Below are positions 9,406-43,421 of a stretch of 64,000 bases of DNA, in pieces (position 1 is the first letter of the stretch; every line of letters starts with the position of its first letter). The notes under the pieces were generated by a model. The model made no database searches. It saw only the letters and a list, made by a program, of their open reading frames with translations, and had not been told where the DNA came from. Location of the stretch: sequence record NC_041884.1; one strand, 5' to 3'. Position numbers and translations under genes: made by a program.

Positions 9406-10090
9406 TTAGTTCCCTATGGTACCCATAAGCATTAGAAATAAGTTGACAATTGTCTACAGTGATATGTGTATTATAATGAGTATGAGACCAGAACCAATAA
9501 TTAAACCCATCTAGGTTTAAATCATTAGTAAAGTATCCTGAATGTTTAGGATCTTTTAAATATGCGGGGTGACTACAGAGGGGAGAAGGAGGAAAGTGTG
9601 TAACGACTACAACATTGTCTTGATGACGATATTGATTGATATAATTATATTGTTTATTAAATAAAGTAATATAATCTTCAGGAGTTATAGTTTTCCCTTC
9701 ATTAGCTATGAAACGGAAATCAGGGAATCTACGGAAGGAGTCTTTTACAACATCTACTTCCCAATCTTCTAGTACATTACTTCTAAAATTAGTAAATAAC
9801 GTACCACCAACAAATGTAACACCTTTATAAATAAAAGGCTTATCTTCTTTTAAATAATTAATACCATGATCATCTAGTCGTTTGTAAACTAAACTGATAT
9901 CTTGATACCAGAGATCATGGTTTCCAGGAATAATAAGAACTTCTTTGTCTAAACTCTTACATAAGTTAACAAATACAATTAACTCTTCCATCCCATCACT
10001 AGCATCTCCACCATGAATAATTAAATCAGCTTCAGGATTAATATGATAGTACATACAATCATGAGTATCTGACATAAATTGAATTTTCAT
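9344..10090 (-). CDS. calcineurin-like metallophosphoesterase
   Basis: SDTH, HGGD, PGNHD, THFPP, SHTH. Confidence 0.9.
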   Translation of the reverse strand: MKIQFMSDTHDCMYYHINPEADLIIHGGDASDGMEELIVFVNLCKSLDKEVLIIPGNHDLWYQDISLVYKRLDDHGINYLKEDKPFIYKGVTFVGGTLFTNFRSNVLEDWEVDVVKDSFRRFPDFRFIANEGKTITPEDYITLFNKQYNYINQYRHQDNVVVVTHFPPSPLCSHPAYLKDPKHSGYFTNDLNLDGFNYWFWSHTHYNTHITVDNCQLISNAYGYHRELIGDEAYKPNLLIEVYPNADK

Positions 10091-11739
10091 TAGAAAGGTA
10101 TATCTCTTGGATAAGGAGCAATATCATAATGGCTAGTTGTTAATTGTTTTAAAGACAACCACTCTTTAGTAACTTCTAAAAGTTCTTCATTAGATCTTAA
10201 AGGATGGTTATAAGCAAGTTTAGCTTGAATAACATCATTGCCTTTAGTAACTTCAATACAAGCTATAGGTTCATTAGATGTTTTATCATATACGCCTACG
10301 ATTGAAATCTCACCTGATACAGCTTTAGTATCATAAACAGCTACACAGATATGAAGTTTAGTTCCAAGATCTAATAACATTTGTGTATGCGTTGCAGGAA
10401 CAAATGAATAGTTTTCTGTCTCGTAAGCTAAAGCAAGTCTATCTTCTGTAAGAGGAATTTCTCTTAAATAATTAGCATCTCTAATGTTACGTTGCAATTG
10501 AGATAAACCATCATGTATTTCAGGAATAGATCTTTTTGGATTCATTACTTCTAAAAGAAGATGCTGTTGATCTTCTCTAAGAAGACTTGTTACTCTAAAA
10601 TAAAGAGAACTGATATCATTAAATATATAAGATCGCTTAAAATTAACAATCTTTTTTAGACTATATCCATATGATAGAAGAATCTGAATAACATCTACAC
10701 AACGAATGTCTATATTATGATTTGTTAATAATAATTCTAAATTATTGGGATCAAACAAGGAATCAATCTTTGCTTTCTTAAGTAAATGAAAAGCTTTAAT
10801 TCGATTATAATCTTGACTTAAGAATCGTTGTATTTGTTTATTAGAGGATCCAATAAATTTTTCTCTTAAAGCTCTAGTACCATATTTATCATAATGATAT
10901 TTAAGAGTAGAGTATTTAATATGAAGACTTTTAACAGGATTACCATTACCAATAACGACATTTAAATCCATCCAGAGAGGATTTCGTAAAGCTCTCATTC
11001 CAGGTCTAAACCCAGATTTTCTTAAAATAGGATAATTATATCTTACATTATTCTCTTCTAAAACATCTAAGAACGTATGGTATAGAGTAGTATCATGTCT
11101 AATTTCATTAGGTACTGCAAATAACTTAATATTATTTCTAGAAATTTTAATATTCCCATCTTCGAAGAAATAGAATAAATGGTAAGATTTACTCTTATTC
11201 GTTCTAATACCTATAGATCCAGTTTTCTTATTTAACCAACATTTCTCTAAAAACCTACTAACTCTAATATAGGTATCAGTTACTTTAACTTTATAATTAA
11301 AATAACTAGAGAAACACTTAACTATAGTTTTATACCGTTGACTTTCTATTACAGGTTGTCTTTCTTCAAGTTTATTAATACCATAACCAGTACTATTAGT
11401 TGTCATTGTAAACCGTTCAGTTATATCAGCAACAACATTAGATATAGAAGTTGAAACACCTATTTCACCATGACTATAACCAAGTAAGAGAAGCAAGTCA
11501 GTTTTTAAAATAGGCACAACATGAGAAGGAATTCCAGTTCTAGTAAATGGATTATGTTTCTCTGAATATTCAGCAAGTACAGAAATCCAATACTTTTCTG
11601 GTATATCTTCTAACAACTTTCTAGAATTAGAAGATAACAAATGTTTTGTATAAGGCTCGATTGGTCGTGCTTTTTCATAACCCTTTAAGGCAGCACGATT
11701 ATGATCTAATTTATTAGGCACTTGAAAGAGTCTACTCAT
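10090..11739 (-). CDS. PcfJ-like domain protein
   Basis: C-terminal HDxL...LGTKLHICVAVY...IACIEV...IQAKLAYN pattern. Confidence 0.7.
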   Translation of the reverse strand: MSRLFQVPNKLDHNRAALKGYEKARPIEPYTKHLLSSNSRKLLEDIPEKYWISVLAEYSEKHNPFTRTGIPSHVVPILKTDLLLLLGYSHGEIGVSTSISNVVADITERFTMTTNSTGYGINKLEERQPVIESQRYKTIVKCFSSYFNYKVKVTDTYIRVSRFLEKCWLNKKTGSIGIRTNKSKSYHLFYFFEDGNIKISRNNIKLFAVPNEIRHDTTLYHTFLDVLEENNVRYNYPILRKSGFRPGMRALRNPLWMDLNVVIGNGNPVKSLHIKYSTLKYHYDKYGTRALREKFIGSSNKQIQRFLSQDYNRIKAFHLLKKAKIDSLFDPNNLELLLTNHNIDIRCVDVIQILLSYGYSLKKIVNFKRSYIFNDISSLYFRVTSLLREDQQHLLLEVMNPKRSIPEIHDGLSQLQRNIRDANYLREIPLTEDRLALAYETENYSFVPATHTQMLLDLGTKLHICVAVYDTKAVSGEISIVGVYDKTSNEPIACIEVTKGNDVIQAKLAYNHPLRSNEELLEVTKEWLSLKQLTTSHYDIAPYPRDIPF

Positions 11740-11745
11740 TAATGA

Positions 11746-11964
11746 TTACCCTAATACAATTATTTTAGTTAATCCTTCTTCATCTGGAATTTCTTTTATA
11801 GTTAAAATAGAACTAGACTTAGAAGGAAAGTCATCTTTATAAAAACCAATACCTAATTGAGATATTGGTTCTACTGTATCACTTTCAGTAACAAAACATA
11901 CTTCTGCTTGAGGAGTATGCTTTTTAATTTTATTTAATTGACGAATTAAATCACTTACATTCAT
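11746..11964 (-). CDS. small hypothetical protein
   Basis: MNVSDLIRQL N-terminus, coupled to the ThiF gene. Confidence 0.55.
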   Translation of the reverse strand: MNVSDLIRQLNKIKKHTPQAEVCFVTESDTVEPISQLGIGFYKDDFPSKSSSILTIKEIPDEEGLTKIIVLG

Positions 11965-13016
11965 TACTTAACCAAGTTACTAATATGAGCAGCTTTACTT
12001 AATTCAAATAATTTCTGATGACTTTCACAGATATCATCAGGGAACTCACTACGAGATAAATCCCCAGCGAATAATACAGAAGCATGAGTTGGAAGTTCCT
12101 TCTCAATACTAACATTAATACCACAAGTAAATTTAATTTTACGATGAGTAATACAGTCAGCAATAGAAGTTTGATATAAGTTAGCTAAAATAGAAGCTGC
12201 CATATCATTACCATTAAACATTTGTTCTGGATTGTCAGCAGTACCTTCTGCATCAGCATCAGCACAAGAATGTACTTTTACTTCTTCCACATCATCAATA
12301 AACGATGGGTGATCCAAGGTATATAAATTTGTAAACACTGGATAAGATACATAACATTGACCGTTAAATAAGTTGATTCCTGCATTGAAATAAATCAAAC
12401 AAGTTTTCTTATAAATAACATAATCAATTTTACGTTTAAATACTTCATTATCTACAAGATTTACAATGATATCAGAAGATTGAATATAGTCATCAATATT
12501 AAAGAAAACATCCTGATCAAGAGGTTGCTCTAACTTAGATACTTTTTGATCATACTCTACAGAAGTACCATATAAAGGAATAGATACTACAGAGATACGA
12601 GGATAAAGATTATTATAACGTTCAGCAAGTACGTCAGATTTTTTCTGACCTACATCTTCATTAATGAAGTTTTGACGAATAATGTTTTTAGTTTCAACCT
12701 CATCATGATCCATGATAACAATTTCAAGATCATAAGCTTGTTCAGGACATTTAGTAAAAGCATCGTTATAAATCTTTAAAAGCTTAGGTAAGAACCAACT
12801 AGCAGTTCCTCCAGCTCCGAACATAACGACACGTGATTTACGATTTAATACATCCTTTAAAAGGTTTTTAGATACAGCTGAACGTAATTGAATCATTTCA
12901 ACAAAACCAACTGAAGCTGTTGCATCAGCTTGTAATTTGGTTTCGTCTTCATAACGATATTTAGTACGAATATCTAAGCTGTCATACCAGTTAAGAACAT
13001 TTTGATTGATTGACAT
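11964..13016 (-). CDS. ThiF/E1-family adenylating enzyme of a ubiquitin-like system
   Basis: GAGGTAS nucleotide-binding loop, DHDEVETKNIIRQNF, VHSCAD candidate catalytic Cys; start MSINQ at 13016 (track start 13046). Confidence 0.88.
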   Translation of the reverse strand: MSINQNVLNWYDSLDIRTKYRYEDETKLQADATASVGFVEMIQLRSAVSKNLLKDVLNRKSRVVMFGAGGTASWFLPKLLKIYNDAFTKCPEQAYDLEIVIMDHDEVETKNIIRQNFINEDVGQKKSDVLAERYNNLYPRISVVSIPLYGTSVEYDQKVSKLEQPLDQDVFFNIDDYIQSSDIIVNLVDNEVFKRKIDYVIYKKTCLIYFNAGINLFNGQCYVSYPVFTNLYTLDHPSFIDDVEEVKVHSCADADAEGTADNPEQMFNGNDMAASILANLYQTSIADCITHRKIKFTCGINVSIEKELPTHASVLFAGDLSRSEFPDDICESHQKLFELSKAAHISNLVK

Positions 13017-16000
13017 TTGTTGTCTCGATAGTTGTATTGTCTTCACTTAATTTGACAATAGTTTTTGCAAATTCATCAGCGACTAGACGTTCTAGTTTTT
13101 CTGATAACTCATACATTTCTGGAACTTCTGCTCCTGACTCGTCTGCATATTTAATTACACAAGCAATAGCTTTGTCTACAAACTCAAGAGCAAGAGATTC
13201 TGAATACTTAACACCATAACGTACTTTATTGATTAAACCATAAATATCGTTAAATGGATTTTTTACTGAATAAAAGTTCGAAGAGTTGCTAGTAGTTGTT
13301 TTAGCTTTATTATTGGGATGTACCTTCCAGCCTTGAGCACTATAGTAGTCCTCATAATCACCTTCAGTCCAACCTGCATACCCACCAGTAGTTCCTGTTT
13401 TACCTGCACCATACATACCTGTGTACATAGGAGCAAACTCAGTGATATTAGCATAATCACTTTCTGGAACAGTGTAATCACTAGTAGCTGTAACACCTAG
13501 TTCATTTGAAAAAATATCTTCGATCTTAAGTTTAATTTCTTTACCATTAGATGCTGCCCGTACAACCATTTCAGGGAGTTCATTGTCAATTTTACCAATT
13601 ACCCCAAAGTAACGAGTTGCCGTTTCATCTTTAAGATCCATTATCTTTTAAGTAGTTCGTTAGACTACTTAGAGTAATCATTAATATTAACCTTATTATA
13701 ATAAATTTCAGTATAACCTCCAAAAATATTACCATTAAAATCTACTGATTTGTTAGATTTTTTAATATTTTGTTCGATTAAAAATAAATCAGGCAATAAT
13801 CCGTTCAATAGTATCTCTTAAGTTTATTTCAACATCAGGATAAAATTTTCTCATTTCTTGTCTTAATTTATATAATCGTCTTTTTGGATTAATACTTAAA
13901 CCATATTTATAATAAATACTATTATTAATTTTTATTTCAAATTCGTATAAAAAGATAGTTTCTAAAGGTCTACGTTGAACTGTAGTTTTATTTAAAAATC
14001 CACTTTGGTTATTTCTAGAGCATGTAGGACAATTACTTCTAGATTGTAAATAGTCATTAGTGCGTGGTGTCCATGTGTTAGAACATTTTTTGCATTCTAA
14101 TTTTATAAATTTAGCATACTCTTGATAACTTCTAGTTAATAAAATGTATAAATCATCTTGGATAACTTTAGAAAGAATTGTAGAATATTTTAATAAATTA
14201 TAAAAATTAGATTTTTGAACTAATGCGTACATGAACTAACTCCCTTAACAAAATCATGAAATAAGGGAAAATAAATATTACCACATGTCTTATGAACTAG
14301 AGCTAATGATATTTTAGTAGTAATTTTAGATAAATCTTGATAGATATATTCATACTCTGAAAAAGTTGTATCAATATAAAGTTTTAAATCCTTTTCTGAT
14401 TTAAAACGTCTTGATTTTTCATTACAAACGCCTGACGTAAGTTTACAATCATTACAGAATTTAGGCTTATTATAAATCAAATTAAACCAATTACTTATAA
14501 CTTCTTTTTGACAAGTATTACAAATTACTAGTATTTTAGATTTGACATTTTTATAAGGTTCTACTTCTCTAATAAATGAAAAACAATTTTCACTTTGAAT
14601 AATCATTTTATATTTTTGAATTTGAAACAAATCTACTCCTCTATATTTCTATAGATGTTGAGACTATATCTTCATCCTATTAAATAGGAGTTTTATGTTT
14701 CCCTTTAATCCGTTCGGAACCACTTGGCGGTAGACCTAAATTTAATTTAGGAATTACTAGTCGTTGAACCTTCCTCTATATTACTAGAGGCTTGGCTGCT
14801 GATTGTCCATTACAAAGAATATATTAATATATTCATCTTCTTTATTTTCAAACATTCACGCTCATCTTTACAGATCACGTTGTAGTTAAAGAAGCTTTAG
14901 GAGTTTCCAGCAATTAATAAAATTTTGTCGACTACATTACTGTAGAAGGTGTCAATCTATTATTTAACACTACTGAAGAAAGCGCTCATATTGACGTGTG
15001 ACACCGTCATAATTGTTAACAAGAGTTTCTTTAATTATCTCTTTTCATTTCCTATCTAAAGTTTGGAAATAGTTCAGACTATCTAATCACCTTCAACAAC
15101 AAATATTTGCTTTGTTAAGGTGTTGGGCGCTCGTGGAGAGGTTATTGTTATCTTACTCACTCTCTAGTCGTTTAACGTTCTTGTCTCTTAATTAAGATAA
15201 GACAAGCTTCGCACAGTGTCGCCTACTAAGCTTCCACTGTTAGCTACAATATATAAATATAATAATGATACAGACTATTGGAATCTAACCAATTCATCCT
15301 AAGTTTACAAAGATGTTTCCCAACATTCTAAGCTCTTGGGGCGTTCACCTTTCACCAAGTCTGCATTACGAATTATCTCGGATTGGTAGGCCTTATGGGA
15401 TTCTAACCCATGATCTCACAAGTTATGAGCTTGGTGCTTTAGAACGCTAAGCTAAAGGCCTGTAATACCGAAAGAATTGGCATCGCCTGGAGGAATCGAA
15501 CCTCTCACGTCCTTCCTGCTTTTTACGTACCAGCTTAGAAGGCTGGTGCAGGGGCAAGCGACACAGATGATTAATTTCATTTTGTAAATTTATATAAGTA
15601 ACACCCTCTTTTGATCGAGGTTCACCCAATTATTCGATTACCATTTCTGATAAAAGCCACTCACATTTAATGGATATCCATAACTACAACTAAATCTGGA
15701 CTTGAATAAATCTCAGGAGTATTAGTATAGTTAATGGTTGCTGCGCTTACTTCTTGTTTAGGTACATGAATGAAGAAATCTTTTTTAATTTTATCCCAAA
15801 CAATAGCACAATAGACTTCAGATTTAATTGTCTTACTAATATTACGATAAAGAACAATTACTTGTTGTAATAATCCAGTAGGAATTTTTGGAATTTCAGA
15901 ATGATCAGGAGTAAAAGAAGTTTCACATTCTTTTGTCAAACCTAAAGCTTTGAAATCTTTTAATTCAGTAGGGATTACAAATGTACCAATAGGAGACTTA

Positions 16001-16101
16001 CGTTGCTGAAAAATACCATTAGCAAAGATTGCATTATGGATATTCTTACCTGATTCTGTATCAAATTTTTCAACAGCAAAAGAGTTAAATAAATCAAACA
16101 T
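12991..16101 (-). CDS. JAB/MPN+ metalloprotease, spliced: join(16101..15670, 15001..14966, 13638..12991), 371 aa
   Basis: joining the exons restores VMDIH|SHVNMSAFFSSV|DLKDETATRYFGVIG, the HxH...SxxD JAB motif; both junctions have a P1 U-G pair and a terminal G. Confidence 0.92.
13665..14232 (-). CDS. intron-encoded GIY-YIG/T5orf172-like endonuclease; the C-terminus lies in the +1 frame after CGG at 13801-13803
   Basis: CKKC..CPTC zinc ribbon, LYEF...YKYGLS...RRL; the +1 frame adds 45 aa ending FGGYTEIYY...; own SD AAGGGAG. Confidence 0.7.
14220..14630 (-). CDS. intron-encoded zinc-ribbon protein (endonuclease-associated part)
   Basis: CNTC...CNDC and HKTC...SCTH motifs; GAGGAG SD upstream of a TTG start. 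Confidence 0.65.
   Translation of the reverse strand: MFQIQKYKMIIQSENCFSFIREVEPYKNVKSKILVICNTCQKEVISNWFNLIYNKPKFCNDCKLTSGVCNEKSRRFKSEKDLKLYIDTTFSEYEYIYQDLSKITTKISLALVHKTCGNIYFPLFHDFVKGVSSCTH
15269..15364 (-). tRNA. tRNA-Leu(UAG)-like RNA with irregular anticodon stem, inside intron 1
   Basis: GCAGACT/AGTCTGT acceptor + A73, GG in the D-loop, CTTAGAA loop, long variable arm, ATTGG/CCAAT T-stem; CCA not encoded. Confidence 0.55.
15384..15461 (-). tRNA. tRNA with CAU anticodon (Ile2 or elongator Met) inside intron 1
   Basis: AGGCCTT/AAGGCCT acceptor, A73-CCA, CTCATAA loop, ATGGG/CCCAT T-stem; C4-G69 suggests Ile2. Confidence 0.88.
15478..15562 (-). tRNA. atypical tRNA-Arg(UCU)-like RNA inside intron 1
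   Basis: acceptor GTCGCTT/AGGCGAT + G + CCA, anticodon arm CCAGC-CTTCTAA-GCTGG, TTCGATT T-loop, no normal D-arm. Confidence 0.65.
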
Positions 16102-16985
16102 TAGAAGTGTCTCCCAATATTAATAGCACCATCGCCACCATTAGGTTCAAAAATATCATCAAATTTGTAACCTAATACTGAACAGAAATAGTAAAGAGTA
16201 AAGATATTATGATACCAATCATGTTCACGCTCTGTAATAGAACGAATAAAGTAATTGATTGAATCTTCACTTTCTGCTAATACTTCTGTTAAAAATTCTT
16301 TAAAACCTTCACGATTTGAATTAACAAAAGAAGTTTTAACTTGATTACGAATACGTAAATCAGAGTTAAAATTAGAATTTAAGTAAGCATGAATAGTAGA
16401 TACTTGTTTATAACTATCTTTTGCTTTTAATAAATCACGATCAAAACTTCCATGCCAACAAACATTGTGATCAAAGTGATTACACAACATAGAAAGAAGT
16501 TGAGAATCATTACTTGGCATATTAATAATGTTAGTAGTAATAATTCCGTAGTTATGAGTTACATTACTAAATTCTGAATTATTTGTATTAACGATTAAGG
16601 CGCCATAATTTTTTAATTTAAAATTAGGGAAACGTACAAAATGATTTTCATCGCCATCTTCATCTTCTTCAGTAATATGGCAGATTCCGTATTTATTGCC
16701 TTCTTTGATATTTACACTACCACCAAATTGGAAAGTACCTGTAAAGGTTACTTCAGGAATCATGTATAAACGTTTTACTTGTCCATTCGCTACACATTCA
16801 CGAATTAAATAAGGACTAATAAAACCAGTATCAGCTTCTTTTAAACCATTAACAGAAGCTTTAGTAAAGAGTTCAGGAACAGATGCTACAGGAACACGTT
16901 TAATAACAGATTGACGTCGATCATTAGTTACACTAACCCGTGCATGTGGTTGTGAACTGTCTAACGTTACATTAATAATAGTCAT
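16101..16985 (-). CDS. prokaryotic E2-like protein (PRTRC protein B / Prok-E2 type)
   Basis: LCNHFDHNVCWHG resembles the P.N....ICWG motif; lies between the Ubl and JAB genes. Confidence 0.6.
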   Translation of the reverse strand: MTIINVTLDSSQPHARVSVTNDRRQSVIKRVPVASVPELFTKASVNGLKEADTGFISPYLIRECVANGQVKRLYMIPEVTFTGTFQFGGSVNIKEGNKYGICHITEEDEDGDENHFVRFPNFKLKNYGALIVNTNNSEFSNVTHNYGIITTNIINMPSNDSQLLSMLCNHFDHNVCWHGSFDRDLLKAKDSYKQVSTIHAYLNSNFNSDLRIRNQVKTSFVNSNREGFKEFLTEVLAESEDSINYFIRSITEREHDWYHNIFTLYYFCSVLGYKFDDIFEPNGGDGAINIGRHF

Positions 16986-17717
16986 AGATATTTCGATTTA
17001 ATTGTAGGAGTAGAACTTAAGACCATAGTGAATTTACTGATGTAAGCATCCATCATTGATGTATCAGGAGCTTGTCGTCTAGTACGAGAAGATGGAAAAC
17101 GATCAACAATATTTCGAATAGTTCGTTCATCAACATCTGCATATCCATTAAGAATGCTTTCAACAAATTCAGGAATATTTAAATCTGGTCTACGTAATAA
17201 GGAGAGAACGTCAGTAGGAAGTTCTTGTGGGACTGTCCCATCAACTTCATTAGGAAACGTTTCAAATAAGGCTTCATTAATTAACAATTGTATGTACCTC
17301 ACGTCTGCTGAAGTAATCATTTTCTCTTACAATACGACTTAAACGTTCTAGAGAATTTCCACGTCTTAATGATACAGGAACACGAGAATCAGAGATGTCT
17401 TTAGTAAGAAGATCTTTAATAACATTAAGTGTCATTGTTAAATGAGATTTCACTGTCAGTTTATTAGGAGGAGAACAATCATACAGATCTTTCATCACGC
17501 TATAAATAAAAGGACTATATGATAGATACATATACATAGTAGCTACAGTATCAATATCAGAATAAGGGATATCAAAAGCAGCTAAGGTTTCTTGAAGGGG
17601 ATTTTCACTAGTTCTATGTGTATTTAAATGATGTTCAAAAGTAGAAGCTTGTCTACTATTAAAACGAGTAAATATTGTAGCTAGTAAATATTTTTCAAAC
17701 GATTTATCAATAATCAT
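16982..17717 (-). CDS. two hypothetical proteins inside the ubiquitin-like operon (16982-17320 and 17277-17717)
   Basis: coupled ORFs; no motif recognised. Confidence 0.6.
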
Positions 17718-17758
17718 TTTATGTATAACCAGAGAGAAGAAAAAACAAAATAGAAAAA

Positions 17759-17787
17759 GGAATATATACTAATTTAGTATATATTCC
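17759..17787 (-). terminator. intrinsic terminator after the Ubl gene
   Basis: 13-bp perfect stem GGAATATATACTA/TAGTATATATTCC followed by a U-rich tract on the minus strand. Confidence 0.75.
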
Positions 17788-17811
17788 TTAAATACTTAAA
17801 CCTTAATAGGC

Positions 17812-18009
17812 TTACGCAGCTTTGTTACCATCTTTCAATTGGAAAGTAACTTCATCACCAGTCACAACAACTTCAGCTTTATCAAGCTCGTTGTACATTT
17901 GACGGAAGATCGCTAAGATCTCTTGTGGAGTTTTGTTTGGAACAGGTTGACGAGTGATACCAGCAGAAGCGTAAGTTACATAATAAGTAGTTGAAGTAGT
18001 CATGGACAT
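17812..18009 (-). CDS. ubiquitin-like (beta-grasp) protein, PRTRC protein C type
   Basis: 65 aa, TPQEIL...MYNELDKA...VTFQ...GNKAA resembles TPEQV...YPEL..A...F...GTKG; strong codon bias. Confidence 0.75.
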   Translation of the reverse strand: MSMTTSTTYYVTYASAGITRQPVPNKTPQEILAIFRQMYNELDKAEVVVTGDEVTFQLKDGNKAA

Positions 18010-18019
18010 TTCCTTTTAA

Positions 18020-19042
18020 TTAATTAAATAGAGAAAACTCATCTAACACAAGTTGATTAATTTGAGAAGGTGTTAGAGAGTATAAAGTTTTAGTTTCGTA
18101 TTTTTCTTTCAAAGCTTTCATAAATAAACCAAGTTCTTTAGTTTCAAGTTTAGTAATTTCTTGTACCACACGACCATTAAACTTTTGTTTAACAGCTTGG
18201 CTAATTCTAAACTCTTCTCTTAAGATATTTACTTTGTCTTCTAAGAAAGGAAATACAGTTTTTAAATGATCAAAATGATCATAGGGAAGTTTTAATGAGT
18301 CTTTCGATAAATCAGGACGGGAATCAATATACTCTAAGAACATATTATAAACCTTTCTCTTTTTATCTCGAACTCTATTAACATTATTCAAGTTTTCAAA
18401 TTTATACAAACCTGTATAAAAATAAGGACTAGATGTTAACCAATCGAACATCTGTATATAAGTGTCAAACCCTTTATTAAATTGTTTAACATCTAATTCT
18501 AATAAATTTAAAACATCTAAATAATTAGTTGATAACTCTACTTCACCAAGTAAGTTATCTTGTTGATCTAAAGGTCGTACTTCATATGTTAAACCATACA
18601 TACCATGTTTAACCTTAAAGACGCCTTTAGATAGCCTTCCAATTAGATTACCTAAATCATTCCAACTAAGATAATTCTGTGTGTACTCAATGTACTGATT
18701 TTGAACGAATATTAAATCTATTTGAAAGGTACCTAATAAGAAAGATATTACTGGTCCGTTACGGAGAGCAATAATATTTTGACTACGTAAGTGTAAAAGA
18801 GTTTCAGTGATGGTGTTATTATTTTCTAATTCTACGAGGATGTCTAAATCGCCATGTGATTCTTTTTCTCTTACTGAGTCTATACATCTATACTTCAAAC
18901 CATTAGCTTCTAACATACATTTAACTGCATATAAGACACTAGGGTAATCAGTAACATGTAATCTTTTTAAAACATTTTCAGGATCTTTACTCTGAATGTA
19001 GGACTTAAAAGCATTTCCACCCATAGTAAGGGCTCCTTTCAT
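18020..19042 (-). CDS. Pol-beta superfamily nucleotidyltransferase-like protein
   Basis: KESHGDLDIL and QIDLI motifs. Confidence 0.65.
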   Translation of the reverse strand: MKGALTMGGNAFKSYIQSKDPENVLKRLHVTDYPSVLYAVKCMLEANGLKYRCIDSVREKESHGDLDILVELENNNTITETLLHLRSQNIIALRNGPVISFLLGTFQIDLIFVQNQYIEYTQNYLSWNDLGNLIGRLSKGVFKVKHGMYGLTYEVRPLDQQDNLLGEVELSTNYLDVLNLLELDVKQFNKGFDTYIQMFDWLTSSPYFYTGLYKFENLNNVNRVRDKKRKVYNMFLEYIDSRPDLSKDSLKLPYDHFDHLKTVFPFLEDKVNILREEFRISQAVKQKFNGRVVQEITKLETKELGLFMKALKEKYETKTLYSLTPSQINQLVLDEFSLFN

Positions 19043-36994: not shown

Positions 36995-37066
36995 TTGAGA
37001 AAATCAGATTCGAACTGATCACGGCCAGAAATTATTCTAGTGCTCTACCAACTGAGCTATTTCACA
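36995..37066 (-). tRNA. pseudo-tRNA with a collapsed anticodon loop
   Basis: TAGCTCAGTTGGTAGAGC D-arm, ATCAG-TTCGAAT-CTGAT T-arm, anticodon arm CTAGA-ATAATT-TCTGG, no CCA. Confidence 0.7.
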
Positions 37067-39220: not shown

Positions 39221-40880
39221 TATAAAATTACATTTACTGTTGGTTCTTTCGACAACACTTTTCGGATTTTATATGAAGATCGTATCAAAGGTTCTAGCTT
39301 CGATCCTCTGTTGTCATGCACCTCTAAACATTTGTGTGGTAACCCACTCACTGAACCTTATCAGCTTGAACTCAATGTGCCACCCAGAGATTACTCTGAC
39401 CTCATTTATGTTGTAAATGTAATTTTATATTTAAATAATAAGAGCCAAGTCTTCACAAGAGGATGGATTCGAACCACCGACAACAGTAGGGATTTTACTG
39501 CCTACAATACTCTACCGACTGAGCTACTCTGCAATTTCCACTCTCTTATTATTTAGATGGTAAGAATATAAGTTAGTGTTAAGACGTTGATACATTAGGT
39601 ATTACCCTAACGCCAAGAGTTGAACTTGTTAAAAACCTTCTGTAACCCAACAACTATCTTTATTACTGGACAGTAATCATCTGAGATTATTAACCTATAC
39701 CGTATTCTTACCTCTAAATAATAATTAAAAGACATCTAATAACCTAACTTCAGATAAGGGTACTTACTCGATTATCATGAGACTCTACTAAATGTCTTTT
39801 AATTATTATTTAAAAGGTGTGAGGTACAACTCTCACAATGAACCATGTAGCCATTTTGGTTAGCGTCAAGCTGTATACAGCTTAGTTTCTCTAGTCAGCC
39901 CGCTTTAGGTTGTCCCTAATTGTGTGATATCAACACTACCATTTTTCTATCTTACGATAACACCAATGATCAAGTGCTTGTGGTACTAGAAGTCATTAAG
40001 GTGAATATGCCTTTATAGATCATACCAAATCTACAGGCCCATCACTCCCTTCAAATTTTATTACGCCACATCCTGTTTGGACTTACACCGTGTTGGATGT
40101 TATTTATCGGTAGAATTTGAGCCATTAACCAGAGCGCATTTATTAACTTATACTTTCATATAAGATTAGACCTTTTAGAGTGTCCTGATTTCTCAAGCTG
40201 AACTCTATTACCATCTCATATAAGTTGTCAGACTTATACTAACTACTTTTAGAATTACTCCTAATTTCGAGTGTCTCTACTATACAAAGGATAAATCCTT
40301 CTTAGCTATTATAACCATATGAAATAGAACCTCACTTAGAATTATAATATTTAGGTAATTGAGGAAAAACATGAGAATATAAAAGCATACTGCCATAATA
40401 TACGAGCCGTTAAGCCATCAGAATCGAACTGAGTCCTCTTTTATACCTCGATGCCCTTCATTATCGAAAAAGGGCTTTGGCACAATTGTGTTGTGCATCT
40501 CGTATCACTTGAGGTAATAACTCTTGGAATCTAGCAGAGGAGCGACCTCTCTTATTTTATATACCGATTGGATTCTTGTCTCGGTTTGTGGGTCTATTAC
40601 ATGTCATCGTTTCTCAGTTGACAGTGAGGGATCTACAAAAATTGGAATAGACTGACAATGGAGGTAATCATTAATCCCCTATTACAGAGATTAATCCTAT
40701 AGAATGCCTAAGAATTTCAGTTGCAATCTTACATTCAAAAGGACTTATATCAATTAGTATATTGGACAATATGTTCTGGAGACGGATTAGGCGTCTCACT
40801 CTTTTACTAAAAATTAGTAAACGCTTTTAGCCTCGGATTAAGAGACATTCCACTACATTTTAAGCTACAGACCTCAATAC
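39221..40880 (-). ncRNA. 1.7-kb non-coding cluster of stem-closed structured RNAs
   Basis: no credible ORF; abutting inverted repeats 39221/39429, 39432/39555, 39552/39718, 39715/39812; several T-loop-like hairpins. Confidence 0.7.
39454..39533 (-). tRNA. pseudo-tRNA with an expanded or alternative anticodon arm
   Basis: TAGCTCAGTCGGTAGAGT D-arm, GGTGG-TTCGAAT-CCATC T-arm, GTAGG-CAGTAAAATC-CCTAC (10-nt loop), bulged acceptor, no CCA. Confidence 0.65.
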
Positions 40881-43347: not shown

Positions 43348-43421
43348 TGGTCCAAAATCTGAGATTCGAACTCAGACGCAGGGTTTTAGGGACCCCTGTG
43401 CTACCATTACACCAATTCTGG
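43348..43421 (-). tRNA. tRNA with CUA anticodon (amber-suppressor type), C at position 33
   Basis: CCAGAAT/ATTTTGG + A + CCA; GGGGT-CCCTAAA-ACCCT anticodon arm; CTGAG-TTCGAAT-CTCAG. Confidence 0.8.

Follow-up and report, generated by a model that had tools for sequence, protein, structure and literature searches.

The window analysed here is a stretch of 64,000 nucleotides (nt) from the Acinetobacter jumbo phage vB_AbaM_ME3 (record NC_041884.1; KU935715, 234.9 kb, genus Metrivirus), to which it is 100% identical, and a window position equals the record position minus 124000. It contains a cassette of genes that may encode a pathway for the processing, activation and conjugation of a ubiquitin-like protein (Ubl), resembling the PRTRC cassettes of plasmids and integrative and conjugative elements (ICEs). 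All the genes lie on the minus strand, in the order Ubl, hairpin, two small genes (X and Y), E2-like, JAB, ThiF-type E1, an open reading frame (ORF) of 72 amino acids (aa) and a PcfJ-like gene. This order had been claimed by an earlier sequence-only reading of the window, and the ORF map bears it out. Apart from JAB, which is split and is listed below, the main components are as follows.

17812..18009, minus strand: Ubl candidate, 65 aa, PRTRC_C-like, C-terminus ..DGNKAA
17789-17757, minus strand: stem-loop and T-run directly 3' of the Ubl gene, 15-bp stem, folding z-score -4.7, terminator- or attenuator-like
16101..16985, minus strand: E2-like protein, 294 aa, with VCW at residues 175-177
11964..13046, minus strand: E1, ThiF-type adenylating enzyme, 360 aa from a GTG start (GenBank start 13016)

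GenBank gives product names to two genes of the cassette, ME3_130 ('ThiF') and ME3_135 ('PRTRC system protein A'), calls the remaining genes 'hypothetical' and annotates a tRNA-Met. A ubiquitin-like system is mentioned neither in the genome announcement (PMC5000817) nor in a jumbo-phage comparative review citing ME3 (PMC7824862). A full-text literature search, which is not proof of absence, found no published account of a phage E1/E2/JAB/Ubl operon beyond the two GenBank product names. At least seven phage loci have kept the cassette, with introns coming and going independently among them. These loci are those of the ME3 clade (ME3, the syntenic metagenomic phage contig L002, and L022-24) and those of the further relatives L016 and L017. 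A metagenome scan with a narrower alignment returned 5 loci.

The PRTRC cassette corresponds to operon type 6d (Ubl, E2-like, JAB, E1) of Iyer, Burroughs and Aravind 2006 (PMC1779556). The best or only NCBIfam matches of the phage E1, JAB and Ubl were PRTRC models (TIGR03735-03742). The E1 is the firmest assignment in the cassette. It matched Pfam ThiF (4.8e-16), and its top NCBIfam match was PRTRC_ThiF (TIGR03736; 2.7e-15, 56.4 bits, below the cut-off of 144.75). Its motifs lie at residues 77-81 (GAGGT), 124-127 (RQNF) and 259-261 (HSC). Alignment to the ThiF proteins of seven PRTRC cassettes shows that the GAGGT loop, the D-x-D-x-V-x3-N-x2-RQ motif and the VD motif are all retained, and places Cys261 of 'HSC' opposite the 'SC' that these enzymes conserve. 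Weak PADLOC matches to the E1-E2 models of CBASS were also found, mostly over ~50 residues of the ATP-binding region. By alignment, the cysteines named earlier in the E1 (HSC) and in the E2-like protein (VCW) are the conserved ones.

The JAB gene consists of three exons separated by two group I introns.

15670..16101, minus strand: JAB exon 1, 144 codons, with the JAB-N domain, Glu95 and the first JAMM His (H144)
15002..15669, minus strand: group I intron 1, 668 nt, Rfam RF00028 match of 29.2 bits (E 6.8e-5) on 15271-15052
14966..15001, minus strand: JAB exon 2, 36 nt, SHVNMSAFFSSV, with the second His and the Ser of the JAMM motif
13639..14965, minus strand: group I intron 2, 1327 nt, ribozyme core 14975-14639, ORFs in the 3' part
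12991..13638, minus strand: JAB exon 3, 215 codons and a stop, beginning GAT, with the JAMM Asp, the remaining JAB core and a phage-specific C-terminal extension of ~170 aa

The 144-codon ORF that opens the gene (15667-16101, minus strand) terminates with ..VVVMDIH followed by TAA, and the NCBIfam match to PRTRC_A (TIGR03735; cut-off 101.8 bits) stops exactly at residue 144 (E 0.0039, 16.8 bits, with the exon-1 piece alone as query). Joining the exons gives 371 aa without stops, reading ..MDIH, SHVNMSAFFSSV and DLKDE.. across the two junctions. Only this spliced product contains the complete JAMM motif H-S-H-x7-S-x2-D (E95, H144, H146, S154, D157). It is colinear with the intron-free homologues of L017 (375 aa, ..HSHNVMGAFFSGTD..) and L024 (373 aa, ..MDIHSHNVMNAFFSATDLADE..), and exon 2 corresponds to HSHNVMNAFFSATD in L024 and to HSHNVMGAFFSGTD in L017. 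Four plasmid PRTRC_A proteins that were aligned with the phage JAB share its Glu, two His, Ser and Asp, as well as the Arg/Trp pair that Iyer et al. 2006 (PMC1779556) described for the JAB-N domain.

The match of intron 2 to Rfam RF00028 (81 bits, E 5e-19) is above the gathering score of 50 bits. That of intron 1 is below it, so that this intron does not qualify by score alone. Intron 1 has a P1 (CCAU/GUGG) with a U.G pair at the splice site, a P10 (UCAC/GUGA) and a final G, and its 5' 69 nt and core are common to the same-site introns of L002 and L016. In L002, the identical 5' intron sequence comes directly after ..GACATCCAT, and the downstream exon begins with TCACAC.. and encodes SHNVMNAFFSATD. 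Rfam gave no intron match on the L002 locus, though introns are evident there from the exon structure. Intron 2 has a P1 (GUGUU/GACAC), again with U.G at the splice site, a P10 (GAUCU/AGAUU) and a final base G13639. Another splice model for intron 2, with ..AGT at the end of exon 2 and ATAATG.. at the start of exon 3, was rejected in favour of this one, which has the U.G pair and a 5-bp P10. An intact ME3 JAB reading frame arises only by the removal of two group I introns, the splicing of which is predicted. The 'spliced JAB' of the sequence-only reading was correct and understated, as there are two introns around a 36-nt exon.

The E2-like protein belongs to a small family, with no more than 26 relatives in a set of 1.84 billion representative proteins. 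Invariant in the family are D52-T53-G54, N169, C176-W177, N207 and D209, Asn169 standing 7 residues before Cys176. The His of 'VCWH', also pointed out earlier, is not conserved. The protein had no direct Pfam or NCBIfam hidden Markov model (HMM) match, and a Pfam scan of 27 family members gave one marginal match to Prok-E2_D (E 0.049). When the family alignment served as a profile against 5.8 billion proteins, it retrieved nothing outside the family and no protein with a Pfam domain; the family HMM found nothing among PDB sequences, and tblastn of the protein against plasmids gave no match. A chain of three links leads from the family to known E2-like proteins. The family profile matched gp214 of Bacillus phage WH1 (hhalign 83%, E 8.7e-6), gp214 matched a Paenibacillus plasmid protein (BLASTP 9e-8), and the Paenibacillus protein matched both Pfam Prok-E2_D (2.3e-13) and PRTRC_B (hhalign 96%, E 2e-9). 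The Cys and the upstream Asn are aligned along the whole chain, and the phage gene occupies the same operon slot as PRTRC_B. The AlphaFold2 model (predicted local distance difference test, pLDDT, 87.7) has the order helix, long beta-meander, Cys loop and helices, which is compatible with a ubiquitin-conjugating (UBC)-like core. Against BFVD, Foldseek matched the model to one protein of 241 aa (E 4e-7); WH1 gp214 has the same length, and the identity of the two could not be confirmed. We consider it likely that the 294-aa protein is an E2, its fold being unproven.

An alignment of four phage Ubl sequences matched PRTRC_C by hhalign (71.5% probability, E 3.6e-5), and the Ubl matched the NCBIfam PRTRC_C model at E 0.07 (13.3 bits, below the cut-off of 45.95). 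Its AlphaFold2 model (pLDDT 82) has a beta-beta-alpha-beta-beta topology, which fits a beta-grasp fold. Judged by its profile, the Ubl candidate is related to PRTRC_C. PRTRC_C proteins end in ..G-x-K-G and the phage Ubls in ..G-[NT]-K-[AN] with 0-2 extra Ala, G61 and K63 being invariant in the latter. The commonest metagenomic relatives encode head-to-tail di-Ubl proteins of 122-123 aa, and a processing protease is therefore implied, as with polyubiquitin. The di-Ubl genes of L022-L024 (10001-10372; P0028-P0030) belong to the most frequently sampled relatives, and the protein is indexed in 333 blocks of the collection.

The hairpin after the Ubl gene, which had also been noticed before, was confirmed. 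Stem-loops of differing sequence are found at the same place in L002, L022, L024 and L017, and no significant one 3' of the Ubl gene in L016; a clear T-run is present only in ME3. Differential expression of the Ubl is plausible from this arrangement.

The two introns of ME3 belong to a wider pattern that the sequence-only reading did not contain: the active-site codons of JAB and E1 are an intron hotspot across the relatives. There are three distinct insertion sites within ~36 nt of the JAMM-motif codons, the third being that of L022, after HSHNVMG. The E1 genes of L002, L016, L017, L022 and L023 have introns containing LAGLIDADG at the D-x-D-x-V-E ATP-site motif, between its V and E. The E1 is intact in ME3 and L024, and the JAB in L017, L023 and L024. 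Mobile introns typically come and go independently in this way, and the pattern also argues for selection on the exons, or spliced products. The intron regions are located as follows.

Window, 13639-15669
L002, 12568-13986
L016, 13589-14895
L017, 11184-12536
L022, 12590-13760 and 14738-16163
L023, 13548-15510

Another feature absent from the earlier description is a cassette of three tRNA genes within intron 1. This cassette and the ORFs of intron 2 lie as follows.

15267..15571, minus strand: tRNA cassette in intron 1, comprising an Arg(UCU)-like element (15478-15571), tRNA-Met(CAU) (15384-15461) and tRNA-Leu(UAG) (15267-15365)
14220-14630, 13789-14232 and 13665-13808, minus strand: three ORFs in intron 2, overlapping or abutting

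The tRNA-Met(CAU) scored 59.9 bits against the Rfam tRNA model, and the tRNA-Leu(UAG) was called by ARAGORN with default settings. The atypical Arg(UCU)-like element was called by ARAGORN with relaxed settings only and scored just 30 bits in Rfam, against tRNA-Sec. The tRNA-bearing insert of ~335 nt occupies a peripheral hairpin loop of intron 1, which is short in the introns of L002 and L016, and this intron has no endonuclease gene. A limited literature search found no report of a phage group I intron with nested tRNA genes. The ORFs in intron 2 gave only weak zinc-finger-type Pfam matches and contain CxxC zinc-finger-like motifs and, by eye only, a GIY-YIG-like stretch. They are probably one frameshifted, broken homing-endonuclease gene.

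Elsewhere in the window, a tRNA with the anticodon CUA (43348-43421, minus strand) was called 'Pyl' by ARAGORN and is of the amber-suppressor type (Rfam tRNA, 54.7 bits). Stop-codon recoding, considered because of this tRNA, was rejected; no in-frame TAG pattern was found, and TAG closes 5 of 67 long reading frames. Two weak or odd tRNA calls, both on the minus strand, lie at 36995-37066 and 39454-39532; one has an undetermined ARAGORN anticodon, and the other scores 30 bits in Rfam, barely over the gathering score.

The remaining genes of the cassette are as follows.

17277..17717, minus strand: protein X, 146 aa, with positional homologues in all related loci at 21-24% identity
16982..17320, minus strand: protein Y, 112 aa as listed (GenBank start 17287), its stop overlapping the E2-like start
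11746..11964, minus strand: small ORF, 72 aa, with a homologue in L002 and not a separate gene in L022-24
10090..11739, minus strand: PcfJ-like protein, 549 aa (Pfam PF14284, 1.1e-12)

X and Y both have positional homologues in all the relatives and diverge fast; in those of Y, a C-terminal ..YL is conserved. X had no match in Pfam, NCBIfam or PHROG, and hhalign gave no similarity of X to PRTRC_E or PRTRC_F, nor of Y to PRTRC_F. The suggestion that the two genes encode E3s or adaptors gained nothing from these comparisons, in which neither an E3 nor PRTRC E or F could be detected as a relative, and remains guesswork. The claimed linkage of PcfJ to the cassette did not hold beyond the ME3 clade. 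PcfJ adjoins the E1 in ME3, L002 and L022-24 only, is not beside the cassettes of L016 and L017, and is missing from those genes downstream of the cassette that were inspected in four PRTRC loci of plasmids. In Bacillus phage WH1, a PcfJ gene and an E2/JAB/E1 triad are both present, ~34 kb apart. On the other side of the cassette, a 340-aa protein (18020-19042, minus strand) has a Pol-beta-type nucleotidyltransferase-like motif (HGDLDILVE), belongs to PHROG 24943 'DNA polymerase' and is without a Pfam match. Its gene stops 10 nt before the Ubl gene, an adjacency that, like the PhoH gene upstream, is seen in the ME3 clade only.

These observations suggest that ME3 carries a phage-borne cassette that processes, activates and conjugates a Ubl and has a common ancestry with the PRTRC cassettes of plasmids and ICEs, a reading to which we give a probability of roughly 60%. 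The E1 and JAB have recognizable homologues and conserved catalytic residues; all the chemistry, the fold of the E2 and the existence of targets are what we infer. Because a stem-loop follows its gene, the Ubl would be made in excess. The JAB metalloprotease would trim Ubl precursors, a step proposed because of the variable tails of 0-2 residues and the di-Ubl fusions in the relatives. The ThiF-type E1 would then adenylate the C-terminus of the Ubl and take the Ubl onto Cys261, from which it would be transferred to Cys176 of the E2-like protein and then onto targets. The JAB might also reverse conjugation.

Several results weigh against this reading. The scores against the PRTRC models all lie far below the curated cut-offs (the JAB being scored on its exon-1 piece), and neither ParB, PRTRC_E, PRTRC_F nor an E3 was found in the ME3 cassette by Pfam, NCBIfam and hhalign. 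The E2-like family is only weakly similar to PRTRC_B when compared directly (hhalign P 0.006), yet the Asn and Cys align. Foldseek with the confident E2-like model returned no E2 or UBC protein from PDB, only meaningless matches such as MHC class II (template modelling, TM, score ~0.09). With the Ubl model, ubiquitin-like domains were among the top Foldseek matches, none of them significant (best TM 0.49). The residue at the position of the terminal Gly of PRTRC_C is Ala or Asn in the phage Ubls, so that the usual C-terminal Gly is missing. Finally, we found no paper describing a function of PRTRC. The proposal of an E2-like gene is accordingly upheld in its invariant Cys and not in its fold, which the search of PDB did not recover. 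The proposal of a PRTRC-type cassette stands in gene order, best NCBIfam matches and catalytic motifs, and falls short in the cut-offs and in the absence of ParB, E and F.

The missing Gly and the unconfirmed fold bear on another explanation, in which the E1 activates the Ubl without any protein conjugate, the Ubl being a sulfur carrier (like ThiS, MoaD or TtuB) or undergoing an MccB-style C-terminal modification, and the 'E2-like' protein being a scaffold. The ThiF family includes the non-conjugating adenylases ThiF, MoeB and MccB, and MccB modifies a C-terminal Asn. An Ala or Asn after the invariant G-x-K would suit such an enzyme, as would an E2-like protein whose fold structure searches leave unconfirmed, and the neighbouring genes are of nucleotide or RNA type (PhoH, the Pol-beta-like nucleotidyltransferase, DHH, a metallophosphoesterase, and Thg1 in relatives). 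We nevertheless regard this explanation as unlikely. It does not account for a 294-aa protein with an invariant Cys and a homology chain to Prok-E2_D, nor for the conserved Cys kept by the E1. The cassette contains no rhodanese, cysteine desulfurase or sulfur-acceptor enzyme, and a JAB protease together with di-Ubl precursors is a hallmark of conjugating systems.

A different proposal concerns the purpose of the cassette and is compatible with the chemistry of a conjugation pathway. The cassette might mainly counter host immunity, either by the JAB stripping host Ubl conjugates (cGAS in type II CBASS, the tail fibre in Bil) or by the E1 and E2 mis-tagging defence proteins. Host Ubl systems of the CBASS type II, Bil and Bub kinds are known to act against phages (PMC10097602, PMC11601596), and the weak PADLOC matches of the E1 point in the same direction, although they span only the ATP-binding stretch. 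Plasmid PRTRC cassettes lie beside genes for ParB, ssb, a helicase and DNA polymerase III beta, which look like replication or establishment genes. However, no likeness of the JAB to Cap3 or BilC emerged beyond the common JAB fold, and for a pure deconjugase the Ubl encoded in the cassette would be superfluous. We think it improbable that counter-immunity is the main role.

Least probable by a clear step is that the ME3 cassette is decaying, its JAB inactivated by intron and tRNA insertions and no longer made: the 2 kb of insertions within the JAMM motif, the score of intron 1 under the Rfam gathering threshold, the fragmented look of the endonuclease ORFs in intron 2 and the possible cutting of the precursor RNA by tRNA processing would agree with decay, but the three exons are open and in frame and restore every JAMM residue, the P1 and P10 pairings are intact in both introns, the exon sequences are conserved with the relatives, and same-site introns occur in relatives with otherwise intact cassettes.

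Starting from the conjugation cassette of shared ancestry with PRTRC, a more far-reaching version can be proposed tentatively, and we hold it to be doubtful as a whole. In it, the phage would run its own complete Ubl pathway, with a non-glycine Ubl, an E1, an E2 and a JAB, and direct it at proteins of the host or of the phage in order to take over the cell or counter its defences, and the JAB would be gated by RNA processing. If such gating is true, two ribozymes must splice, and either the nested tRNAs must stay uncut until then or the ribozyme must work in two pieces. Bacterial Ubl conjugation has so far been studied as anti-phage defence (CBASS type II, Bil, Bub), and a complete phage-encoded pathway, if true, would mean that the same chemistry is used from the side of the virus. 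PRTRC-type cassettes are common on plasmids and ICEs, and a lytic phage makes a cassette of this type readily accessible to study. The non-glycine C-terminus of the Ubl and the di-Ubl precursors provide biochemical handles, and the intron-free alleles of the relatives are ready-made constructs. For intron biology, the interest lies in a hotspot in two active-site motifs and in a group I intron that houses a tRNA cassette.

Several known systems can be compared with the ME3 cassette. With regard to the introns, the comparison set consists of multi-intron phage genes (td, nrdB and sunY of T4, orf142 of Twort, and the DNA polymerase genes of SPO1-like phages and Bastillevirinae). As in these genes, group I introns stand at active-site codons, some with homing endonucleases, and intron-plus and intron-minus alleles exist. 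They differ in that the host genes in ME3 and its relatives encode a JAB protease and an E1, that in one of the ME3 introns a tRNA cassette replaces the endonuclease gene, and that the two ME3 introns are just 36 nt apart.

The defence systems Bil (types I and II), type II CBASS with Cap2/Cap3, and Bub, which have been studied experimentally, follow the same logic as the phage cassette, with an E1, an E2 and a JAB-type peptidase, and in Bil and Bub also a Ubl; in Bub, the peptidase is described as processing a precursor (PMC11601596). They are host systems, however, and their E1s have tandem adenylation domains or E2-E1 fusions. A search for proteins specific to CBASS type II, Bil or Bub (E1-E2, BilD, BubE) gave only the weak local E1-E2 matches of PADLOC. 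The ME3 cassette and these systems are unrelated at the family level.

In a second lineage, E2_D-like, large JAB and ThiF genes form triads in Bacillus jumbo phages and Bacillales plasmids.

L005, 4707-7801: triad of Bacillus phage vB_BceM_WH1, gp214-216
L007, 4863-7840: triad of a Paenibacillus urinalis plasmid

Next after the plasmid triad comes a gene of the PAPS-reductase family. The triads of the Bacillus phages (WH1 gp214-216, Edson) resemble the ME3 genes in their homologous E2-like family and adjoining JAB and ThiF, and these too are jumbo phages with 0305phi8-36-like structural genes (PMC5000817). In contrast, their JAB is much larger (~460 aa), no Ubl gene is annotated (judged by annotation only), and no introns were noted.

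The PRTRC cassettes themselves have the same set of components, namely a small Ubl, a Cys-bearing E2-like protein (Prok-E2_D), a JAB with JAB-N and a ThiF E1 with the conserved S-C. Their order C ... B - A - ThiF matches the phage order Ubl ... E2-JAB-E1, and both are carried by mobile elements beside replication-type genes. The phage cassette differs in having two small unrelated proteins where PRTRC_F would stand, in a Ubl that ends in Ala or Asn where PRTRC_C ends in Gly, and in 'FNxDL' where PRTRC_B has a His after its Cys ('FTH'). The phage JAB also has its C-terminal extension of ~170 aa, the phage E1 has N- and C-terminal extensions, and the phage genes are interrupted by group I introns. 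On sequence grounds, the ME3 cassette is not a member of PRTRC; it is a divergent phage lineage of the PRTRC kind.

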